A stretch of 64,000 nt of DNA, from the sequence record MK308675.1. One strand, written 5' to 3'. Positions 4,704 through 51,316 of this stretch are shown here, piece by piece. Numbering within the stretch: the first letter of the stretch is position 1; each line of letters starts with the position of its first letter. Position numbers and translations under genes: made by a program. The notes beneath the pieces are model-generated. The model was not told the origin of the DNA. It made no database searches and saw only the letters and a list, made by a program, of their open reading frames with translations.

Positions 4704-5540
4704 ATGTCTCAAGCATATACTTCCGTTAAAACTATTTACGGCGCAGCATTAGAAGCATCGCGTCGTCCAGGGAATAGTTTTACTCCTCTTCAGCACAGTA
4801 CACTAAACGAACACTTTAATATTGAGTTCGGTACTTCTTACCCAGCAGATGCTCAACCTGAAGTGCAGTACTTAGCTATCGGTCGTGGCGGCCACCGTAA
4901 CGTACCGGGTGGTAGTGGCGAGTCACTAACTGACAACCTACAACACCAAATCGTTAACGCGTGTTTGTTCGACCATCTTCCTTTCTTGCTCGTTCCTGTA
5001 GGCAGCGATATCTCTTCTTCTGAGCGCGATAAGTATCGCCTTCGTCGCGTAGAGAATCACGGCGGTTCAGATTACATTGCATACTACTTGAAGAAGATTG
5101 ACCAAGCAGTATCGACTCCAGTAATCAAAGAGTTGACTATCACAGATGGTAACATCACGGAAGACGTTTATACGCCAACGACTACTCAGCTACAGCCTAC
5201 TCCGGTTTCGATGACTAACGGCATCGTGAATACAGCAACGGGTAAACACATCGCTATTGATACTCCGTTCCCTGTTGTATTGAGTTCAGATGACGTGTCT
5301 AAGATTCTAGACGCTGTTAACATCATCTACTCTGATGCTCGTTACGCTGTAATCTCTGAGATTGGTATCGTGTCAGCAATCGACGCTAACGTAACAGCAG
5401 CATCTGACGGCGTTAACTACGTAGAAGCTCTAGCAGCACAAATCTACAACCACATCGGTACTAACATTCCTCTTGCTCAGCAGCAGCAGGGTGTAACCAT
5501 GAACTTCACTATCGGCACATCAATGCCTTGGGTACAATAA
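4704..5540 (+). CDS. Virion structural protein (phiKZ gp127-like)
   Basis: 278 aa. STLNEHFNI, YLAIGRGGH, LPFLL and KYRLR...YIAYYLK motifs typical of this family, plus synteny. Confidence 0.65.
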   Translation: MSQAYTSVKTIYGAALEASRRPGNSFTPLQHSTLNEHFNIEFGTSYPADAQPEVQYLAIGRGGHRNVPGGSGESLTDNLQHQIVNACLFDHLPFLLVPVGSDISSSERDKYRLRRVENHGGSDYIAYYLKKIDQAVSTPVIKELTITDGNITEDVYTPTTTQLQPTPVSMTNGIVNTATGKHIAIDTPFPVVLSSDDVSKILDAVNIIYSDARYAVISEIGIVSAIDANVTAASDGVNYVEALAAQIYNHIGTNIPLAQQQQGVTMNFTIGTSMPWVQ

Positions 5541-6121
5541 TGCTATATCCTTTACCGAAGGGTAGCACGTACAGAATAGTTGCAACTGACCCCGGCTCTA
5601 ATACAGCCGGGTTTGTTTGTGTCGAAGTAGATGTGGACAAAAGAACATATCATGTTATCGAAGCGATTACCGTAAAAGGTAATAACGTACTTAAACGTTT
5701 CGGTGAACTTAAGGAGCTCAATGAGGAACGCTTCATGAGAAACTTAGGTTATGGTATGGACTATGAAAACTTCCTAGTAAAACACGACCCTTTCTCAATC
5801 GCATCGGAGGCTCCTTATAAAGGACGCTTCGTAGCCGCGTTCAAGGCTCTAACAGAACAGATTACTGTACTGCGAGCTTTCCTATGGAAATGGGACCGTA
5901 CTAAGACCTTCCACCTTTATGAACCCTCAGTCGTTAAGAAAGCGATGGGTGTAAAGGGTGGCTCTAAAGATAAAGAAGATATGCGCAGGGCCCTTGCAAA
6001 AAGAACTGACATATCTTATGGCGACGGAATTTCTCTTGATGTCTTAGACGAACACACAGTCGATGCTGTGTGCGTTGCAATTCATCATTCGGAGAAGTTA
6101 AACTTATGGCCACAAACTTAA
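5540..6121 (+). CDS. ruvC: RuvC-like Holliday junction resolvase
   Basis: IVATDPGSNTAG (catalytic D), ASEAP (E), PSVVKKAM and DEHTVDAVCVA (D..D) give the RNase H-fold RuvC signature. The ATG overlaps the upstream TAA (TAATG). Confidence 0.85.
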   Translation: MLYPLPKGSTYRIVATDPGSNTAGFVCVEVDVDKRTYHVIEAITVKGNNVLKRFGELKELNEERFMRNLGYGMDYENFLVKHDPFSIASEAPYKGRFVAAFKALTEQITVLRAFLWKWDRTKTFHLYEPSVVKKAMGVKGGSKDKEDMRRALAKRTDISYGDGISLDVLDEHTVDAVCVAIHHSEKLNLWPQT

Positions 6122-45542: not shown

Positions 45543-47144
45543 ATGGAAAAAGACGAATTTGATTTAAGCTACCAACCGGAAGCCCTTCCGGAACAGGAGC
45601 AAGAAACAAAGGAACCTGAAGCCCAACCGGTTAACTTTGAATATGACGAGCTGGATATGCCGGAAGGCTACCAGTTTGTTTCGCCGTTCATGGAAGCTAA
45701 CGAAAGCGACATGGCGGAGATTGCCCTGCCCGGTTCTGAAACAGACGTGAATCATTTGGCTCACCTAATCCACGAAATACGTTCAGACGAAACTCTGAGC
45801 ATCGAAGATAGACGAGCGACTGAAGAATACCTTCGTCAGTTGTTAGGTCAAGGCACGCTAAGTGAACGCTATGGCGCTCTGCATGAAGGCAAGACTACCT
45901 TGGCTCAGTACCTAGCCATAGATGGACGCCGCGTTGCTAACTCGCGCATTGGCTTTAAGACCGAAGACGGCACTCGCTTACGCGGTGCTGCTGCGCGTTC
46001 TCGCATGCAGGCTAAACTAGGCACAGGTACTCCTGTGGTTTGGCGCATGTGGCACTCAGGTTTCTCTGTTGAAATGGGTAACTTTGCTCCAGGTGAAATC
46101 TTTAAGCACCAGGTCGACTTGCTTACTGCGGTTGAGAACATCGCTATTAAGACTAACGGCCAAATCCTTTCTGCCGACGATGCGTACTATGTAACTAAGA
46201 TGACCGACTTCTGTATCGAGCACATCTATAACTGTACCATCAAGAACTGGTCACATGACGTTATCCGTCAGCGCCTAGATGTTCGCGACATCTACACTCT
46301 TCTTTGTGCAGGTCTTGCAGCAATGTACCCTAACGGTTATCCGTTTGTTCGTGACTGCCGCTTTAAGATAGATAAAGAGAAAGCCTGTGACTGGTCTACT
46401 CTTAAAGGTCTGGAAGATGTTCGCAAGATTACCCGTCTAGACTTCCGTCTACTTACTTGGGAAGACAGTGACAAGTTCACTCCTGCGCAAGTACGTCTTG
46501 TTAACATGCCATGGGACTCTGTGACGGTCAAGGACCTAGACGACTACCGCGATAACCTACCGGAACAAGTAGTTACCACAGGTGTTCTCAATGAGAAGAC
46601 TGGCGGTGATTCTATCTGGCGTGCGGTTATTCGTGCACCGTTCTATTCTGACTATCGTCGAGAAACTCTAGAATGGGTTTCTGACGTAGAGCTACAAGTT
46701 GACCGTGCTCTAGCTAATGCCCCTGATACTTCTCCTGAAGCTGCTAACGTTCTGCGCCGTCAGTCGATTGAGTCTTACATCAAGCGCATTACTGCACAGC
46801 GTCACTCTAGCTGGATTCGCGAAATTGTCGAGATGGAAGGCACCAGTGAGATTCTTTACGGTGGCGAGAACGTTGGCAAGGAAGGTTTGATTAACCGTAA
46901 AGAAGTCGTAGAGCGTTTAGCTGACATGTCTGAAAACGGTGAAGTCTGTGCTAACCTTATTAAAGCGGTAGAAGACTATAAGGCGGAGAACACATTCTCG
47001 TTCGTGGCTATTCCTAACTTCCAGTGTCCTACTTGTAAGAAAGGCCAGTCTGAACCTAAGGCTACACGACCACACCTAATCCCGATTCCGGTGACTCACT
47101 ATTTTTTCGCTATAACGGTATCGAATTCCGGCCAGAGAAACTAA
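45543..47144 (+). CDS. Conserved protein with C-terminal CxxC, possible tail/baseplate assembly chaperone (phiKZ gp77-like)
   Basis: 533 aa. YPNGYPF, IPNFQCPTC and IP...FF end motifs. The chaperone role is inferred from resemblance to T4 gp26/gp51-type proteins. Confidence 0.55.
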   Translation: MEKDEFDLSYQPEALPEQEQETKEPEAQPVNFEYDELDMPEGYQFVSPFMEANESDMAEIALPGSETDVNHLAHLIHEIRSDETLSIEDRRATEEYLRQLLGQGTLSERYGALHEGKTTLAQYLAIDGRRVANSRIGFKTEDGTRLRGAAARSRMQAKLGTGTPVVWRMWHSGFSVEMGNFAPGEIFKHQVDLLTAVENIAIKTNGQILSADDAYYVTKMTDFCIEHIYNCTIKNWSHDVIRQRLDVRDIYTLLCAGLAAMYPNGYPFVRDCRFKIDKEKACDWSTLKGLEDVRKITRLDFRLLTWEDSDKFTPAQVRLVNMPWDSVTVKDLDDYRDNLPEQVVTTGVLNEKTGGDSIWRAVIRAPFYSDYRRETLEWVSDVELQVDRALANAPDTSPEAANVLRRQSIESYIKRITAQRHSSWIREIVEMEGTSEILYGGENVGKEGLINRKEVVERLADMSENGEVCANLIKAVEDYKAENTFSFVAIPNFQCPTCKKGQSEPKATRPHLIPIPVTHYFFAITVSNSGQRN

Positions 47145-47161: not shown

Positions 47162-47614
47162 TTGGATGTCGAATTAACGGAAGAAGAAAGGGAAGATGCT
47201 TGGCAGCAGTATTTCGCGATACAAACCCAAGACCCGATAGCGCGTAAGATGATGGCTCGTGAAATCTTTGAGACTTTCTTTAAGATTCACGACCATAATG
47301 TGCCTGACCCGCTCGACCCTTTCCCTCTGGTAACGACTAAACCAAAACGTGCCCAGAACTGGGCGTCTAGAGAAACCATTAAACGGTTGATTGCTATAGG
47401 CGCTCCAGATAAGACAGGCATGAGTCTAAATGAACTCCTCTATGAAACTAACATGTCTGACTTCGAAGACATCATAGAAGCATGTGAGGACGTCATGAAG
47501 AGAGAAAGCGCTACTGCTACTAAACTACGGAATGAATCCGAAGAGCAGATGGCGAAGGTTCTCAATACCATCGAAGAACGAAAGAAAGATAATAATTCAA
47601 GCCCTCTGGCCTAA
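47162..47614 (+). CDS. Hypothetical 150-aa ORF, probably expressed as the -1 frameshift extension of the 533-aa gene
   Basis: Only a TTG start with a poorly spaced SD. The frame is open back to 47060, across the slippery site T TTT TTC at 47102-47108. Confidence 0.55.
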   Translation: MDVELTEEEREDAWQQYFAIQTQDPIARKMMAREIFETFFKIHDHNVPDPLDPFPLVTTKPKRAQNWASRETIKRLIAIGAPDKTGMSLNELLYETNMSDFEDIIEACEDVMKRESATATKLRNESEEQMAKVLNTIEERKKDNNSSPLA

Positions 47615-47624
47615 TGGCCAGAGG
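47603..47624. terminator. Bidirectional terminator
   Basis: cctctggcc/ggccagagg stem between convergent genes. Confidence 0.65.
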
Positions 47625-47635
47625 AGCTTTATTAT

Positions 47636-48148
47636 TTACAGGTCTAGTTGTGGCTCTTGAACGATAGCATCAATCCACTTAAGTGCAAGTGCTTCTTCAG
47701 GCCACTTATAAACATCGCGTTCCAGTTCCTTCAAGATTTCTTCAGCGGGACGACCCCACATCTCAGACATCATGTCGAAAAGAATCTTGTTATAGTGACG
47801 CATTGGACGTAGGCCAGTCTCTGAGCGCTCAGCCATACCGCGAGCTTCATGTAACATGAACTGCGTGTTAGGAAGCGATAGGCGCTTACCTGGAGTACCT
47901 AGGCCAATAACACAGAATGCACCAGCACTCATCACGGTACCGACAGCTACGGTCACGATGTCGCTTTTCGCTTTCTTAGCCGCATGGTACATAGCTAGAA
48001 GCGCAGGGACAGAACCGCCGTATGAATGTACGGGTAGGTAAATGTCTTCACTAGAAATGGAGTCGAAGAATTCGATTTGCTGGATTACACTGTAAGCCAT
48101 GTTATCGTCGAATGGGCCTTCAATGTAGACAGTTCGGTCAAGTACCAT
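47636..48148 (-). CDS. clpP: ClpP-family serine protease (catalytic triad intact)
   Basis: HSYGGSV, VMSAGAF (Ser), KRLSLPNTQFMLHEA (His) and ERD (Asp). Confidence 0.9.
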   Translation of the reverse strand: MVLDRTVYIEGPFDDNMAYSVIQQIEFFDSISSEDIYLPVHSYGGSVPALLAMYHAAKKAKSDIVTVAVGTVMSAGAFCVIGLGTPGKRLSLPNTQFMLHEARGMAERSETGLRPMRHYNKILFDMMSEMWGRPAEEILKELERDVYKWPEEALALKWIDAIVQEPQLDL

Positions 48149-48150
48149 GA

Positions 48151-48720
48151 TTACTCTCCTAACTGTTGTTGAGGCGGACGTGCTGCTTCAATAGGGTTTT
48201 CAAAGTTAGGACGACCCATAACCTGTAGACCCATAGCGATTGCTTCTTCGTAACGGAAGATGTCGTTCTCTTTCATGAAGTCTTTAATGTCATCTGGGGT
48301 GATGCCATCGAATGCTTCAGCGATACGCATACGTGCACGGGCGTTTACTGCTTCTTGGGCAGCGGCACCAATCTCAAGGTCGGTTAACTGTGCATAATCA
48401 GAGCCACGCTGTTCGTAAGGAAGGATAAGAACAGACTCTGTAATGAATGCGTTTTCTTTACCTACAGCGGCTGCTAGCACTAAGTCCATGATGGACAACA
48501 TGTCTAGATAGCGCACCTGAGGCTTAAGAGCTAGGTTCTGACGAATAACATCGTACATGCCTAGTAGAACATGAGGACACACGATAAGGCTTTGCTGTTC
48601 CAACAGTGGCTGGAACGGTTCCTTACCTTCTGTCTCACGTTTAGCATTTAGAGCTTCTACTTCTGCAAAGAAACGCATCAGTGCAAGTGGAGTGCTCAAC
48701 TTGTGACGTTTATGGTACAT
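48151..48720 (-). CDS. Catalytically inactive ClpP paralogue (ClpR-like)
   Basis: 189 aa from ATG 48720 (AAGGGA SD). GMYDVI...LKPQV matches ClpP AIYDTM..IKPDV; TDLEI...MKENDIFRYEEAIAMGL matches TDIEI...[17 protein letters not shown]. The Ser and His positions are not conserved. Confidence 0.65.
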   Translation of the reverse strand: MYHKRHKLSTPLALMRFFAEVEALNAKRETEGKEPFQPLLEQQSLIVCPHVLLGMYDVIRQNLALKPQVRYLDMLSIMDLVLAAAVGKENAFITESVLILPYEQRGSDYAQLTDLEIGAAAQEAVNARARMRIAEAFDGITPDDIKDFMKENDIFRYEEAIAMGLQVMGRPNFENPIEAARPPQQQLGE

Positions 48721-48812
48721 TAGGATATCCCTTAAAAGATGAATAAAAGAACGGCCGGTTCTATTGGATTCGAAGAAAAAAGAAAGAAGAATAGGAGAGA
48801 GCCGAAGCCCTC

Positions 48813-49739
48813 TCATAAATGTTCTGCATATTGTTTCTCTTTAAAGGTTTTAAAGCGTATGCGGATTTTGTCCTTTACGTCTTCCGGGACGTGTACTGCT
48901 GCGGTCAGTTTATCGGCTAGGTCTTTCTCTGTTAGTTCCCAGTAATGACCCATGGCATCTCTTAAGTTAGGGAAGGTTTTAAAGCCGTCTTTATTCTTCC
49001 CCGCTAGCCATTTATCGCCCGACTTCTTAACGCCTAAGATATCGCCTGGTTCGACCCTAGATAGCACATTGAGATATCCGTTTAAAGAAGCTGGGAGGAA
49101 GCAACAGGTGTCTTTAGAATAAAGACGTAGCTCTGGAGCAAGAAGGTCTTTATCGAGCTGGTAAGTCGAATCAGGGATGTTTTCCGTATACCACTTAGCG
49201 AAGTTCTGAAAGTTAAACCAATCAGGATGGACTTCACAATCTTTATATGCTTCGTAGTCTTTGCTGTCTTCTTTATAGCAGCGCTTAAACATATTCATCC
49301 ATGCCGAATACTCAGGCAGATTCTTCCCTCCAACATACTGCTTATACGGGCCATCTCCCAAGAAACCTCTGCCTTCGATTACCGGATGGCACTTGTCTCT
49401 AATCTCTCCCGACTTAAGGCGCTCTTTACGCGTCCACAACTTAAAGCCCGTTTTTACAAACTCTACATGTACTTTTAGGCTGTTCACGTATTCTAAAACT
49501 CGGACAGTGCCATGGTGTTTTGTTTCATGTAGAGTGCCTTCTAGATAAGGGTTATCTAGGCTCTTGTCTCTGACGTCTCCTTTTGATAGTGCCGTTTTGA
49601 ACACTACGTCGATGTTTCCCGTATTCAGGAACTTTACCTTGACCTTATAAGGGTCGTTGTTTTCTATAACCTCGACGGTCCCCGAGCGCTTAGTCTCGTG
49701 TGTAGAACCGACAGGATAAGTGCTTATTTCATATTTCAT
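48813..49739 (-). mobile_element. Free-standing HNH-type homing endonuclease gene
   Basis: Two tandem N-terminal repeats (G..HETK..GTV.V.E....KV.V.F..TG), YSAWMNMFKRCY, W.NFQNFAKWY and QLDKDLL...YSKDTCCFLP, a typical phage HNH endonuclease core. Confidence 0.8.
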
Positions 49740-49795: not shown

Positions 49796-51316
49796 TTAGA
49801 TGCCTATTGTCATGCCTAAATCGACTTTCTTGTAAGACTTACATCGTCCAATCAAATCAATCGAGCGCTTATGCTCATAGTTTAAATGCTGAGGGACATT
49901 GCGGTTCCATAACATAAAGAAGTATGGGTCCTTATCCGGGTGTTTACGGATAGGTCTTAAGCGGCCCATGATTTGTCGCTGTAGCTGAGTAGACGAAATA
50001 GCAACAGTGTTCCAACCTACAGACAAGTTCTTGATGTCGACACCTGTACCTGCACCTTTCGGTGTAGAGAAGATGATGTCTCTCTCATAGAGTTCCTCGT
50101 CTTTCGCACCTGCCACGTAACAGCCAATGGTGTGTTCTGGCCAAGCTTTCTTAGCTTCTTCTGCTAGGAACTGAGCCATCTTGATGGTGGCGCAGATAAC
50201 CAGACACTTAGTCCCTTCCAACTGCCTTCTAATAAAGGAGACATCGACACATTCCTTTATGAGTCCCCAGTACTCTTTCTTAAGCTTAGCTTTTCGGAAT
50301 ACTTGTTTCTCGAAGTTAACATGGCTATAGCCCCGTGGACCTTTACCTGTTAAACCGGCTTTCTTAGCAGCATTATAGAATGCCGACCGGACTTGGATGT
50401 GCTGATTTGGCTTGGACTTCCATCGGTCTTCGTCTGGATAAACCCTACCATACATCTTGTTTATAAACGAGTTATCGCTAACGAGTGTAGCGGACAAGAA
50501 CATCATTCTTTCCACATTGGTATACATAACTTGTTTACATAAAGCATGTATCGACTCATGAACTTCGTCTCGGATTATGAACCCTACTTGTAGAAACTCC
50601 ATCAGTTGGTCTGGCGGAACTTCATACGGGAAAGGTTCGTCCTTGTTCTCATAATCGCTAATGTAGTTACGAAGGGTCGTGGCGGAGAAGAAGATGAACT
50701 TGGCTTCGAGCATATCGTGTTTCTGCATGTCGCAGAGTGCACGGATAGCATCACCGCCTTTAATAACGAGAATTTCACTTTGACCGATATCGCAGTACTC
50801 GTTAGCGTCCTTAACCCAAGTCTTAATATGACTCGGTTCCATTATGAACGCTGTTCTCTTCTTCAAGATACAGGCTGTATAGAATCCGCAATACGTCTTC
50901 CCGAATCCCGTATCAGCTTCTAAGACACGCGTAACTTTATTAGGCTCCAAAGCAAACTCTAGTGCCTGAGGCTGTTCATCGCGGGGAGAAAAGGGACTAG
51001 TCCAGTTAATCTCGATGTCTAAACCTTCAGGTACATCCGGTGTCTCCACAGAGACTCGACTTGCATCGAACCCCATGAATTCCAGATGGCTCAATAGGGG
51101 CTCAAAGTCGGCACGAAGTAAACGGAACTCACTGTTGTCGCTGGTTCGAGCAGCGTACACAGCTTTGTTCTCTGTCACGTATTGTCGCGTTCTAGGGTTG
51201 AAGTTCTTTTCTGTCTGTAAGAGATTAGCGCCTATATAAGACTTAATCGCTTTCAGTTCAGATAGGTGTTCTGCCCTGACGCGGATACCGTGAGTATATA
51301 CCCTTATTTGTATCAT
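49796..51316 (-). CDS. Superfamily 2 DExH helicase (UvsW-like; phiKZ gp75-like)
   Basis: Q-motif PRDEQ, ADTGFGKT, RDEVH, FLSAT, GTGVDI and QIMGRLR. Confidence 0.9.
   Translation of the reverse strand: MIQIRVYTHGIRVRAEHLSELKAIKSYIGANLLQTEKNFNPRTRQYVTENKAVYAARTSDNSEFRLLRADFEPLLSHLEFMGFDASRVSVETPDVPEGLDIEINWTSPFSPRDEQPQALEFALEPNKVTRVLEADTGFGKTYCGFYTACILKKRTAFIMEPSHIKTWVKDANEYCDIGQSEILVIKGGDAIRALCDMQKHDMLEAKFIFFSATTLRNYISDYENKDEPFPYEVPPDQLMEFLQVGFIIRDEVHESIHALCKQVMYTNVERMMFLSATLVSDNSFINKMYGRVYPDEDRWKSKPNQHIQVRSAFYNAAKKAGLTGKGPRGYSHVNFEKQVFRKAKLKKEYWGLIKECVDVSFIRRQLEGTKCLVICATIKMAQFLAEEAKKAWPEHTIGCYVAGAKDEELYERDIIFSTPKGAGTGVDIKNLSVGWNTVAISSTQLQRQIMGRLRPIRKHPDKDPYFFMLWNRNVPQHLNYEHKRSIDLIGRCKSYKKVDLGMTIGI

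Follow-up and report, generated by a model that had tools for sequence, protein, structure and literature searches.

Why does a giant phage keep two adjacent genes of the ClpP type when only one of them encodes a complete catalytic triad? The question is raised by a stretch of 64,000 nucleotides of sequence record MK308675.1 (hereafter the window; free of N), in which almost all genes are annotated as hypothetical proteins. The record belongs to the 290-kb genome of the giant Vibrio phage Yong, a member of the phiKZ-like clade. On the minus strand of the window, where a first-pass annotation made from the DNA letters had placed them, lie the two genes that we call R and P.

48151..48720, minus strand: R, a catalytically degenerate ClpP paralogue of 189 amino acids (pseudo-ClpP, "ClpR-like"), annotated as QAX96030.1
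47636..48148, minus strand: P, an active-type ClpP of 170 amino acids, recognized by its match to Pfam PF00574 and by alignment with Escherichia coli ClpP
48160..48154, minus strand: Shine-Dalgarno sequence of P, AGGAGAG, within the final codons of R, read directly from the sequence

We found that R is a conserved protein, translationally coupled to P, that has the fold of ClpP and lacks a functional triad; the pair is a ClpP/ClpR-like arrangement. R begins with MYHKRH, a start that is kept among its homologues, and its stop codon TAA (48153..48151) is separated by 2 nucleotides from the ATG of P (48148..48146), which ends at 47636. Direct reading of the sequence bears out the layout given in the first-pass annotation, a 189-residue open reading frame (ORF) with a ClpP starting 2 nucleotides past its stop and the Shine-Dalgarno sequence inside it. 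Judged by this gap and by the position of the Shine-Dalgarno sequence, R and P are translationally coupled. A programmed frameshift fusing R to P is an unnecessary assumption, since each relative has an independent start of P with its own spacing and the N-terminus of P is conserved as a start.

P is an active-type but divergent ClpP

P is a member of the ClpP family (MEROPS S14). It matches the Pfam CLP_protease model with an expectation value (E) of 3.7e-30 and 105.6 bits (cut-off 20.2), and the solved bacterial ClpPs in the PDB with a best E of 8e-27, residue 2 of the query being aligned to residue 25 of the chain. In the alignment with the ClpP of E. coli MG1655, our reference, Ser74, His99 and Asp145 of P fall on the positions of Ser97, His122 and Asp171, and the full Ser/His/Asp triad is kept in eight of the nine partner ClpPs encoded beside R. 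The Gly-Gly of the oxyanion loop is found as SYGG in P, while the equivalent segment in R is NP(H/x)D-like. With the NCBIfam ClpP equivalog and subfamily models P scores 103 bits, below all of their cut-offs (249 and above), so it is a divergent family member and not an orthologue of cellular ClpP. The partner P proteins also give weak matches to NfeD1b_N.

In one metagenomic relative (L009; positions 4711-5643, Logan SRR26065854), the partner ClpP has Asn instead of the triad Asp and His instead of the oligomerisation sensor Arg described below. It also carries a C-terminal extension of about 140 amino acids, acidic and rich in Pro, Thr and Glu, and its R likewise has a long acidic tail. The same change of the triad Asp to Asn is reported for Listeria ClpP1.

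R has the ClpP fold and no functional triad

As a single sequence, R has no match in Pfam, PHROGs, NCBIfam, PADLOC or the PDB (phmmer), and the BLASTP comparison of R with P is not significant. The relationship appears with profiles. A profile of 11 R-family sequences (R and 10 relatives) retrieves ClpP chains from the PDB at an E of 1.9e-11, and hhalign joins the R family to E. coli ClpP plus the partner ClpPs with a probability of 98.0% (E 1.2e-12), collinear over residues 1-184 of R and beginning at strand β1 of the E. coli protein, and to the partner ClpPs alone with 97.2% (E 9e-11). Sub-threshold Pfam CLP_protease matches are found in 4 of the 11 aligned sequences, and the R homologue of phage BONAISHI, ORF86, matches a Geobacillus phage Clp protease at 2e-4.

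The structural models agree with the profiles. AlphaFold2, given an alignment of 16 sequences, folded R with a predicted local distance difference test (pLDDT) of 91.4 and a predicted template modelling score of 0.83, and in a Foldseek search with this model the best 50 PDB neighbours were all ClpP (probability 1.0, template modelling score, TM, about 0.65), with identities of 17-21% between R and bacterial ClpPs in these alignments. The model of R deposited in BFVD, which is independent, agrees with ours at a TM of 0.85. A single-sequence AlphaFold2 run reached a pLDDT of 40 and was discarded. By homology and by fold R belongs with ClpP, and the resemblance that the first-pass annotation had drawn by eye turns out to be far beyond chance, but at the profile level only.

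The modelled architecture is β1-αB-β-αC-β-αD with a handle helix of 25 residues (112-136) and without helix A. The handle helix is of full length and has a QxT-D-L-E-I motif at residues 111-117. The C-terminal tail, about residues 170-189 (48151..48210), is disordered. The tails of 5 of the 10 R proteins are disordered, mostly acidic and alike at the terminus, where they end in LGE, QPE, EGE, EGE and EGEG. The C-terminus of ClpP exits on the apical face close to the docking pocket, so the tail of R could be a binding motif.

In Yong R, the triad positions are occupied by Ser76 (or Ile77), Tyr102 and Asn152. The residue at the nucleophile position depends on the alignment, being Ser76 by hhalign and MAFFT and Ile77 by the HMMER alignment to the PDB. 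Across the R family (n = 10), the nucleophile position reads S, S, T, N, Y, G, G, S, S, T; the His position Y, H, T, S, F, I, A, I, H, I; and the Asp position N, G, K, Q, K, K, G, T, K, G. A complete Ser-His-Asp triad is present in none of the 10. The dead triad of the first-pass annotation stands, as does Tyr at the His position; its replacement of Ser by Ile holds in one alignment and not in the others, and Asn152 at the Asp position can now be added.

With the R profile, the bacterial ClpPs (1.9e-11) score above the chloroplast Clp subunit 7eko_A (2e-07), and we found no specific relation to the ClpR of cyanobacteria or plastids.

R is under purifying selection and is kept together with P

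An exhaustive HMMER search of 1.84 billion representative sequences with R gave six real relatives, and tblastn begun from the genes in syntenic position in BONAISHI and pir03 gave four further phage copies. A word-indexed homologue search returned R itself and one relative of 88% identity only, and its profile version added only BONAISHI and C-ZP2022; neither R nor P retrieved a relative in scans of IMG/VR. The alignment of the R family is too variable for a pattern scan. One further candidate, a metagenomic protein of 3832 amino acids (P0005) made of about 16 tandem repeats of about 203 residues, was excluded from the family because its E of 2.9e-22 is the sum of repeat matches of 3-5 bits each; the case illustrates that repeat proteins can fake significance in phmmer.

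R lies directly upstream of P in all 12 genomes or contigs with readable context (Yong, BONAISHI, pir03, C-ZP2022, sm033, L021, which is the 88% identical relative, L006, L007, L008, L009, L010/L011 and L012), with a spacing of -4 to +9 nucleotides, although the identity between R proteins is merely 17-36% for most pairs. The co-occurrence of the two genes across jumbo phages, which the first-pass annotation had named as a check on the pair, is therefore complete in this set. Around them the gene order is conserved as well: RNA polymerase β and β', a helicase, R, P and then three genes in reverse orientation.

Between Yong and L021, R has a ratio of nonsynonymous to synonymous substitution rates (dN/dS) of 0.14 at a dS of 0.55, and is under purifying selection. 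It evolves faster than P (mean pairwise identity of 23% versus 33%), as expected of a subunit that was released from catalytic constraint yet retained for structure. Yong has exactly one R and one P, and we found no further ClpP-like genes in its whole genome. The solo ClpPs of the phages SCTP-2, PBECO4 and phiKT1024 have no R-like neighbours. As these solo ClpPs stand without R, and the two that were scanned against the NCBIfam ClpP models (PBECO4 and phiKT1024) are of full length, the combination of a truncated P with R is an innovation of this clade.

Ring-ring interface residues are divided between the two proteins

In Staphylococcus aureus ClpP, the handle residues Gln132 and Glu135 interact with Arg171 (bioRxiv 10.1101/713214). 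In ClpP generally, a QXT motif together with an Asp-Arg oligomerisation sensor stabilizes the two-ring interface and the geometry of the active site (PMC9035409). Handle helix E of P has a deletion of 4-5 residues, and P lacks both the QxT motif and an acid equivalent to E. coli Asp134 (S. aureus Glu135); helix E of R, in contrast to the shortened helix of P, is of full length, with the QxT motif present in Yong R. The handle acid is acidic in 10 of 10 R proteins and in 0 of 9 P proteins. Its partner (E. coli Arg170, S. aureus Arg171) is Arg in six of nine P proteins and is never basic in R, where nine of ten proteins have an acid, and the acid next to the sensor Arg in P is Lys in 6 of 10 R proteins. 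The elements of the ring-ring interface are thus split reciprocally between P and R, as would be expected of a common interface, a pattern that is suggestive only. We did not adopt these reciprocal residues as proof of a P7:R7 stack, because the charge-reversed sensor of R speaks against it at one of the contacts.

Neither protein has the gate

In ClpP, gating and cooperation with ClpX and ClpA depend on helix A and on the axial loops at the N-terminus. P begins at about mature residue 23 of the E. coli protein (strand β1) and lacks both elements. No longer ORF is possible, and the NCBIfam ClpP models match P only from profile position 26-31. The truncation is common to all nine partner ClpPs, and R likewise starts at β1 without axial loops and without helix A. 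In the docking pocket (H-site) of the partner ClpPs, as mapped by sequence, Phe82 is replaced by Lys, Thr, Arg, Glu or Asn, Leu48 by Glu in eight of nine (by Met in L009), and Tyr62 is variable. The pocket residues are not conserved in R either, and the replacements in both proteins are polar and often charged. A tblastn search of the whole 290-kb genome with E. coli ClpX detected no ClpX-like ATPase (best E 0.78), which extends to the genome the earlier remark that the window contains no Clp ATPase.

With gate and unfoldase-cooperation features missing from both subunits and no phage Clp ATPase detected, an open-pore, unfoldase-independent enzyme is the inference that we draw. Besides a hetero-oligomeric Clp core, the first-pass annotation had suggested that the pair may poison or redirect host ClpXP or ClpAP. 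The sequence gives the latter no support, both subunits being without axial loops and helix A and having their docking-pocket residues replaced. Hijacking or poisoning of host ClpP, or redirection of host ClpX or ClpA, would fit these features less well than a heteromeric peptidase that works independently of an unfoldase.

Genomic setting

Around the pair, a consensus scan gave two further features, both of them pattern matches only:

48795..48814, minus strand: terminator-like hairpin, GAGAGGGCTTCGGCTCTCTC with a T-rich tail, separating R from the HNH gene upstream
47603..47624, both strands: G+C-rich hairpin, CCTCTGGCC-TAAT-GGCCAGAGG, between P and a convergent ORF of 150 amino acids (47162..47614)

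The first hairpin may mark the upstream boundary of the R-P unit, whose promoter presumably sits in the spacer 48721..48794. The second is likely a bidirectional terminator and, if so, closes the unit at its downstream end.

Between the helicase (49796..51316) and the pair there is a gene for an HNH homing-endonuclease-like protein of 308 amino acids (48813..49739, minus strand; phrog_953, E 1.3e-37). Yong and its close relative L021 have the gene at this position; it is absent there from the metagenomic relatives and from BONAISHI, pir03 and sm033. The conserved block seems to have received it as a mobile insertion. On the other side, a conserved protein of 533 amino acids with a CPTC motif at its C-terminus (45543..47144, plus strand; phrog_4585, E 2e-48) forms, together with small flanking genes, a block convergent to the R-P pair that is kept in all relatives.

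BONAISHI, one of the phages with the pair, has virion and non-virion multisubunit RNA polymerases (PMC6207643) and a chimallin gene (PMC10587174). Yong has a homologue of BONAISHI ORF71, the reported chimallin (ChmA), outside the window at 76333..78237 of MK308674.1 (also L014:16366-18027), with an E of 6e-26 and 22% identity over 578 amino acids. The homologue points to Yong as a nucleus-forming, chimallivirus-like phage.

A probable phage-specific peptidase of two subunits

We consider, with a probability of about 0.6, that R and P together make up a phage-specific peptidase of ClpP type from two kinds of subunit, one catalytic (P) and the other non-catalytic and obligatory (R), most likely independent of an unfoldase. 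P would supply the Ser-His-Asp active sites, and R would be an obligatory structural or regulatory partner, ClpR-like in function and of independent origin. Their complex would be an open-pore peptidase in need of no unfoldase, with peptides and proteins that are unfolded or loosely structured as its substrates inside the infected cell. The physical co-assembly of P and R, its stoichiometry (stacked P7/R7 or mixed rings), its independence of an ATPase and its substrates are all things that we infer.

A more elaborate picture can be drawn, although we regard it as doubtful when taken as a whole. In a clade of nucleus-forming, chimallin-encoding marine jumbo phages, a minimal, gate-less and unfoldase-independent Clp barrel of two subunits would have evolved, in which the dead R templates or activates the handle-shortened P and the apical acidic tail of R, with GE at its end, directs the complex to its substrates or to some place in the cell. 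Such a phage would then degrade host proteins, defence proteins included, in bulk or selectively and with no host Clp component.

Several points weigh against a joint peptidase of R and P. Only about 12 genomes with the pair are known. The alignment used for the AlphaFold2 model of R contained true ClpPs, a concern that is mitigated by the independent BFVD model. A profile of P has no significant match to R (E 3.4), and the R profile scores the canonical ClpP of SCTP-2 (1.2e-08) better than R's own partner; R being closer to canonical ClpP than to P, the pair is not shown to be a recent tandem duplication. At the ring-ring interface, the sensor pair is charge-reversed in R (Lys-Glu) relative to P (Asp/Glu-Arg), and with canonical geometry the reversed sensor could just as well promote contacts of R with R and of P with P, and not of P with R, at that site. 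The mapping of the docking pocket in R depends on the weakly aligned N-terminal half of the protein. Finally, the single ClpX query is compatible with a very divergent or unrelated phage unfoldase, or with a host ATPase that docks via a new surface.

Alternative readings of the pair

R might act alone as a poison or decoy. Its canonical-looking handle (QxT-D-x-E-x on a full-length helix E) would stack on host ClpP rings or mix into them and shut down host ClpXP or ClpAP, for instance protecting phage proteins or blocking a defence triggered by proteolysis, and P would act separately. Phage inhibitors of host proteases are well established, T4 PinA and T7 gp4.5 acting against Lon, and this reading draws on the canonical handle features, better kept in R than in P, and on the preference of the R profile for the canonical SCTP-2 ClpP over its own partner. 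Nevertheless, R is strictly coupled to P in translation and co-conserved with it in all 12 cases, which points to a common task of the two. The Arg that is contacted by the handle acid is present in P, which makes P an equally good target, and the identity of R to bacterial ClpPs in the Foldseek alignments is low. We consider a decoy unlikely.

Also unlikely in our view is a P/R core with host ClpX, ClpA or some other AAA+ unfoldase as its motor, docked via a non-canonical surface, so that the unfolding power of the host would be redirected to substrates chosen by the phage. Heteromeric ClpP1P2 cores dock their ATPases on one ring only (PMC9035409), P is nearer to the cellular ClpP models than to those of the ClpP-related prohead proteases (103 versus 31 bits), and the conserved acidic tails ending in GE, on the apical side of several R proteins, could be a docking element. 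However, the N-terminal loops and helix A are missing in both subunits, the H-site residues are polar or charged in both, P is far below every curated ClpP cut-off, and no Clp ATPase of the phage itself was detected.

A role of the pair in virion assembly, as a further maturation or scaffold protease of ClpP type, is highly improbable and effectively excluded. In its favour, the N-terminal loops are missing from ClpP-related prohead proteases too, and one of the PHROG head-maturation-protease families, which match P weakly, does so at 1.8e-12 (phrog_94). With the head-maturation model NF045542, however, P reaches 31 bits (cut-off 120), against 103 bits with the cellular ClpP model, so that P fits the cellular models much better and does not come out as a prohead protease. 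The pair lies in the conserved block of RNA polymerase and helicase genes and not beside portal, scaffold or capsid genes, and ORF86 and ORF87 are not among the listed structural ORFs of BONAISHI. Moreover, a separate head maturation protease of the T4 gp21/phiKZ type is encoded elsewhere in the Yong genome, at 124531..125337 (phrog_3014, E 9e-60; see also PMC7765460), so the pair is not the prohead protease, in agreement with the opinion of the first-pass annotation.

A decaying, functionless duplicate would explain the lost triad and the faster evolution of R, but with an ORF that is intact in all 12 highly diverged genomes, a dN/dS of 0.14, a confident fold prediction and a conserved translational coupling to P, this is the least credible reading and is effectively excluded as well.

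Relation to known Clp systems

Heteromeric ClpP cores with dead subunits are known from cyanobacteria, plastids and apicomplexans. The cyanobacterial ClpP3/ClpR and plastid ClpP/ClpR cores and the ClpR of Plasmodium resemble the phage pair in that an active ClpP stands with a triad-less paralogue of ClpP fold that is retained under selection. R differs from the cyanobacterial and plastid ClpR in being encoded by a phage and in its independent origin, its best solved relatives being bacterial ClpPs. ClpP3/R and the plastid cores work with ClpC-type ATPases, whereas both phage subunits are without axial loops and helix A, their docking pocket is not conserved, and their co-assembly would have to be assumed.

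The other obvious comparison is with the bacterial ClpP1P2 systems (Mycobacterium tuberculosis, Listeria monocytogenes, Streptomyces, Chlamydia, Pseudomonas), in which there are, as in the phage, two adjacent and diverged clpP genes; activity there requires, wholly or for the most part, that the two products assemble as the different rings of a hetero-tetradecamer (PMC9035409). ClpP1P2 chains of M. tuberculosis and Streptomyces are among the structural neighbours of the R model. In ClpP1P2, however, both subunits have a nucleophile and N-terminal loops and one ring docks ClpX or ClpC1, while one of the phage subunits is dead and both are truncated.

The solo ClpPs of other jumbo phages (PBECO4/Asteriusvirus, phiKT1024-type vibriophages, Salicola phage SCTP-2) are also phage-encoded serine proteases of the ClpP family with a patchy distribution, and jumbo-phage ClpP is thought to act on host proteins and not in virion maturation (Iyer et al. 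2021, PMC7824862). Those of PBECO4 and phiKT1024 are of full length (the NCBIfam profile matches from position 1-6) and have no R neighbour, unlike the truncated P with its R in the Yong/BONAISHI/pir03 clade. ATP-independent peptidases with a ClpP/crotonase-fold domain, such as the ClpP-related prohead proteases, NfeD and SppA/TepA, have, like P, no gating loops and work without a Clp ATPase, as we propose for P; P is much closer to cellular ClpP, is not fused to scaffold or membrane domains, lies outside the head module and is paired with a dead paralogue.

In the BONAISHI record, ORF86 is labelled "Clp protease subunit" from a BLASTP match of 5e-05, without discussion (PMC6207643). The literature that we searched yielded no account of a pairing of ClpP with pseudo-ClpP in a phage, nor of the dead triad, the joint truncation or the co-conservation of such a pair.

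If R and P do form a common peptidase, this independently evolved viral version would be a natural "minimal" experiment on the roles of the inactive subunit and of the N-terminal gate in a Clp barrel. The two proteins are small, soluble-looking and easily co-expressed, which makes the hypothesis directly testable. It would also mean that a clade of chimallin-encoding vibriophages, which are under development for biocontrol in aquaculture and corals, own a proteolytic machine whose targets could be defence or housekeeping proteins of the host.

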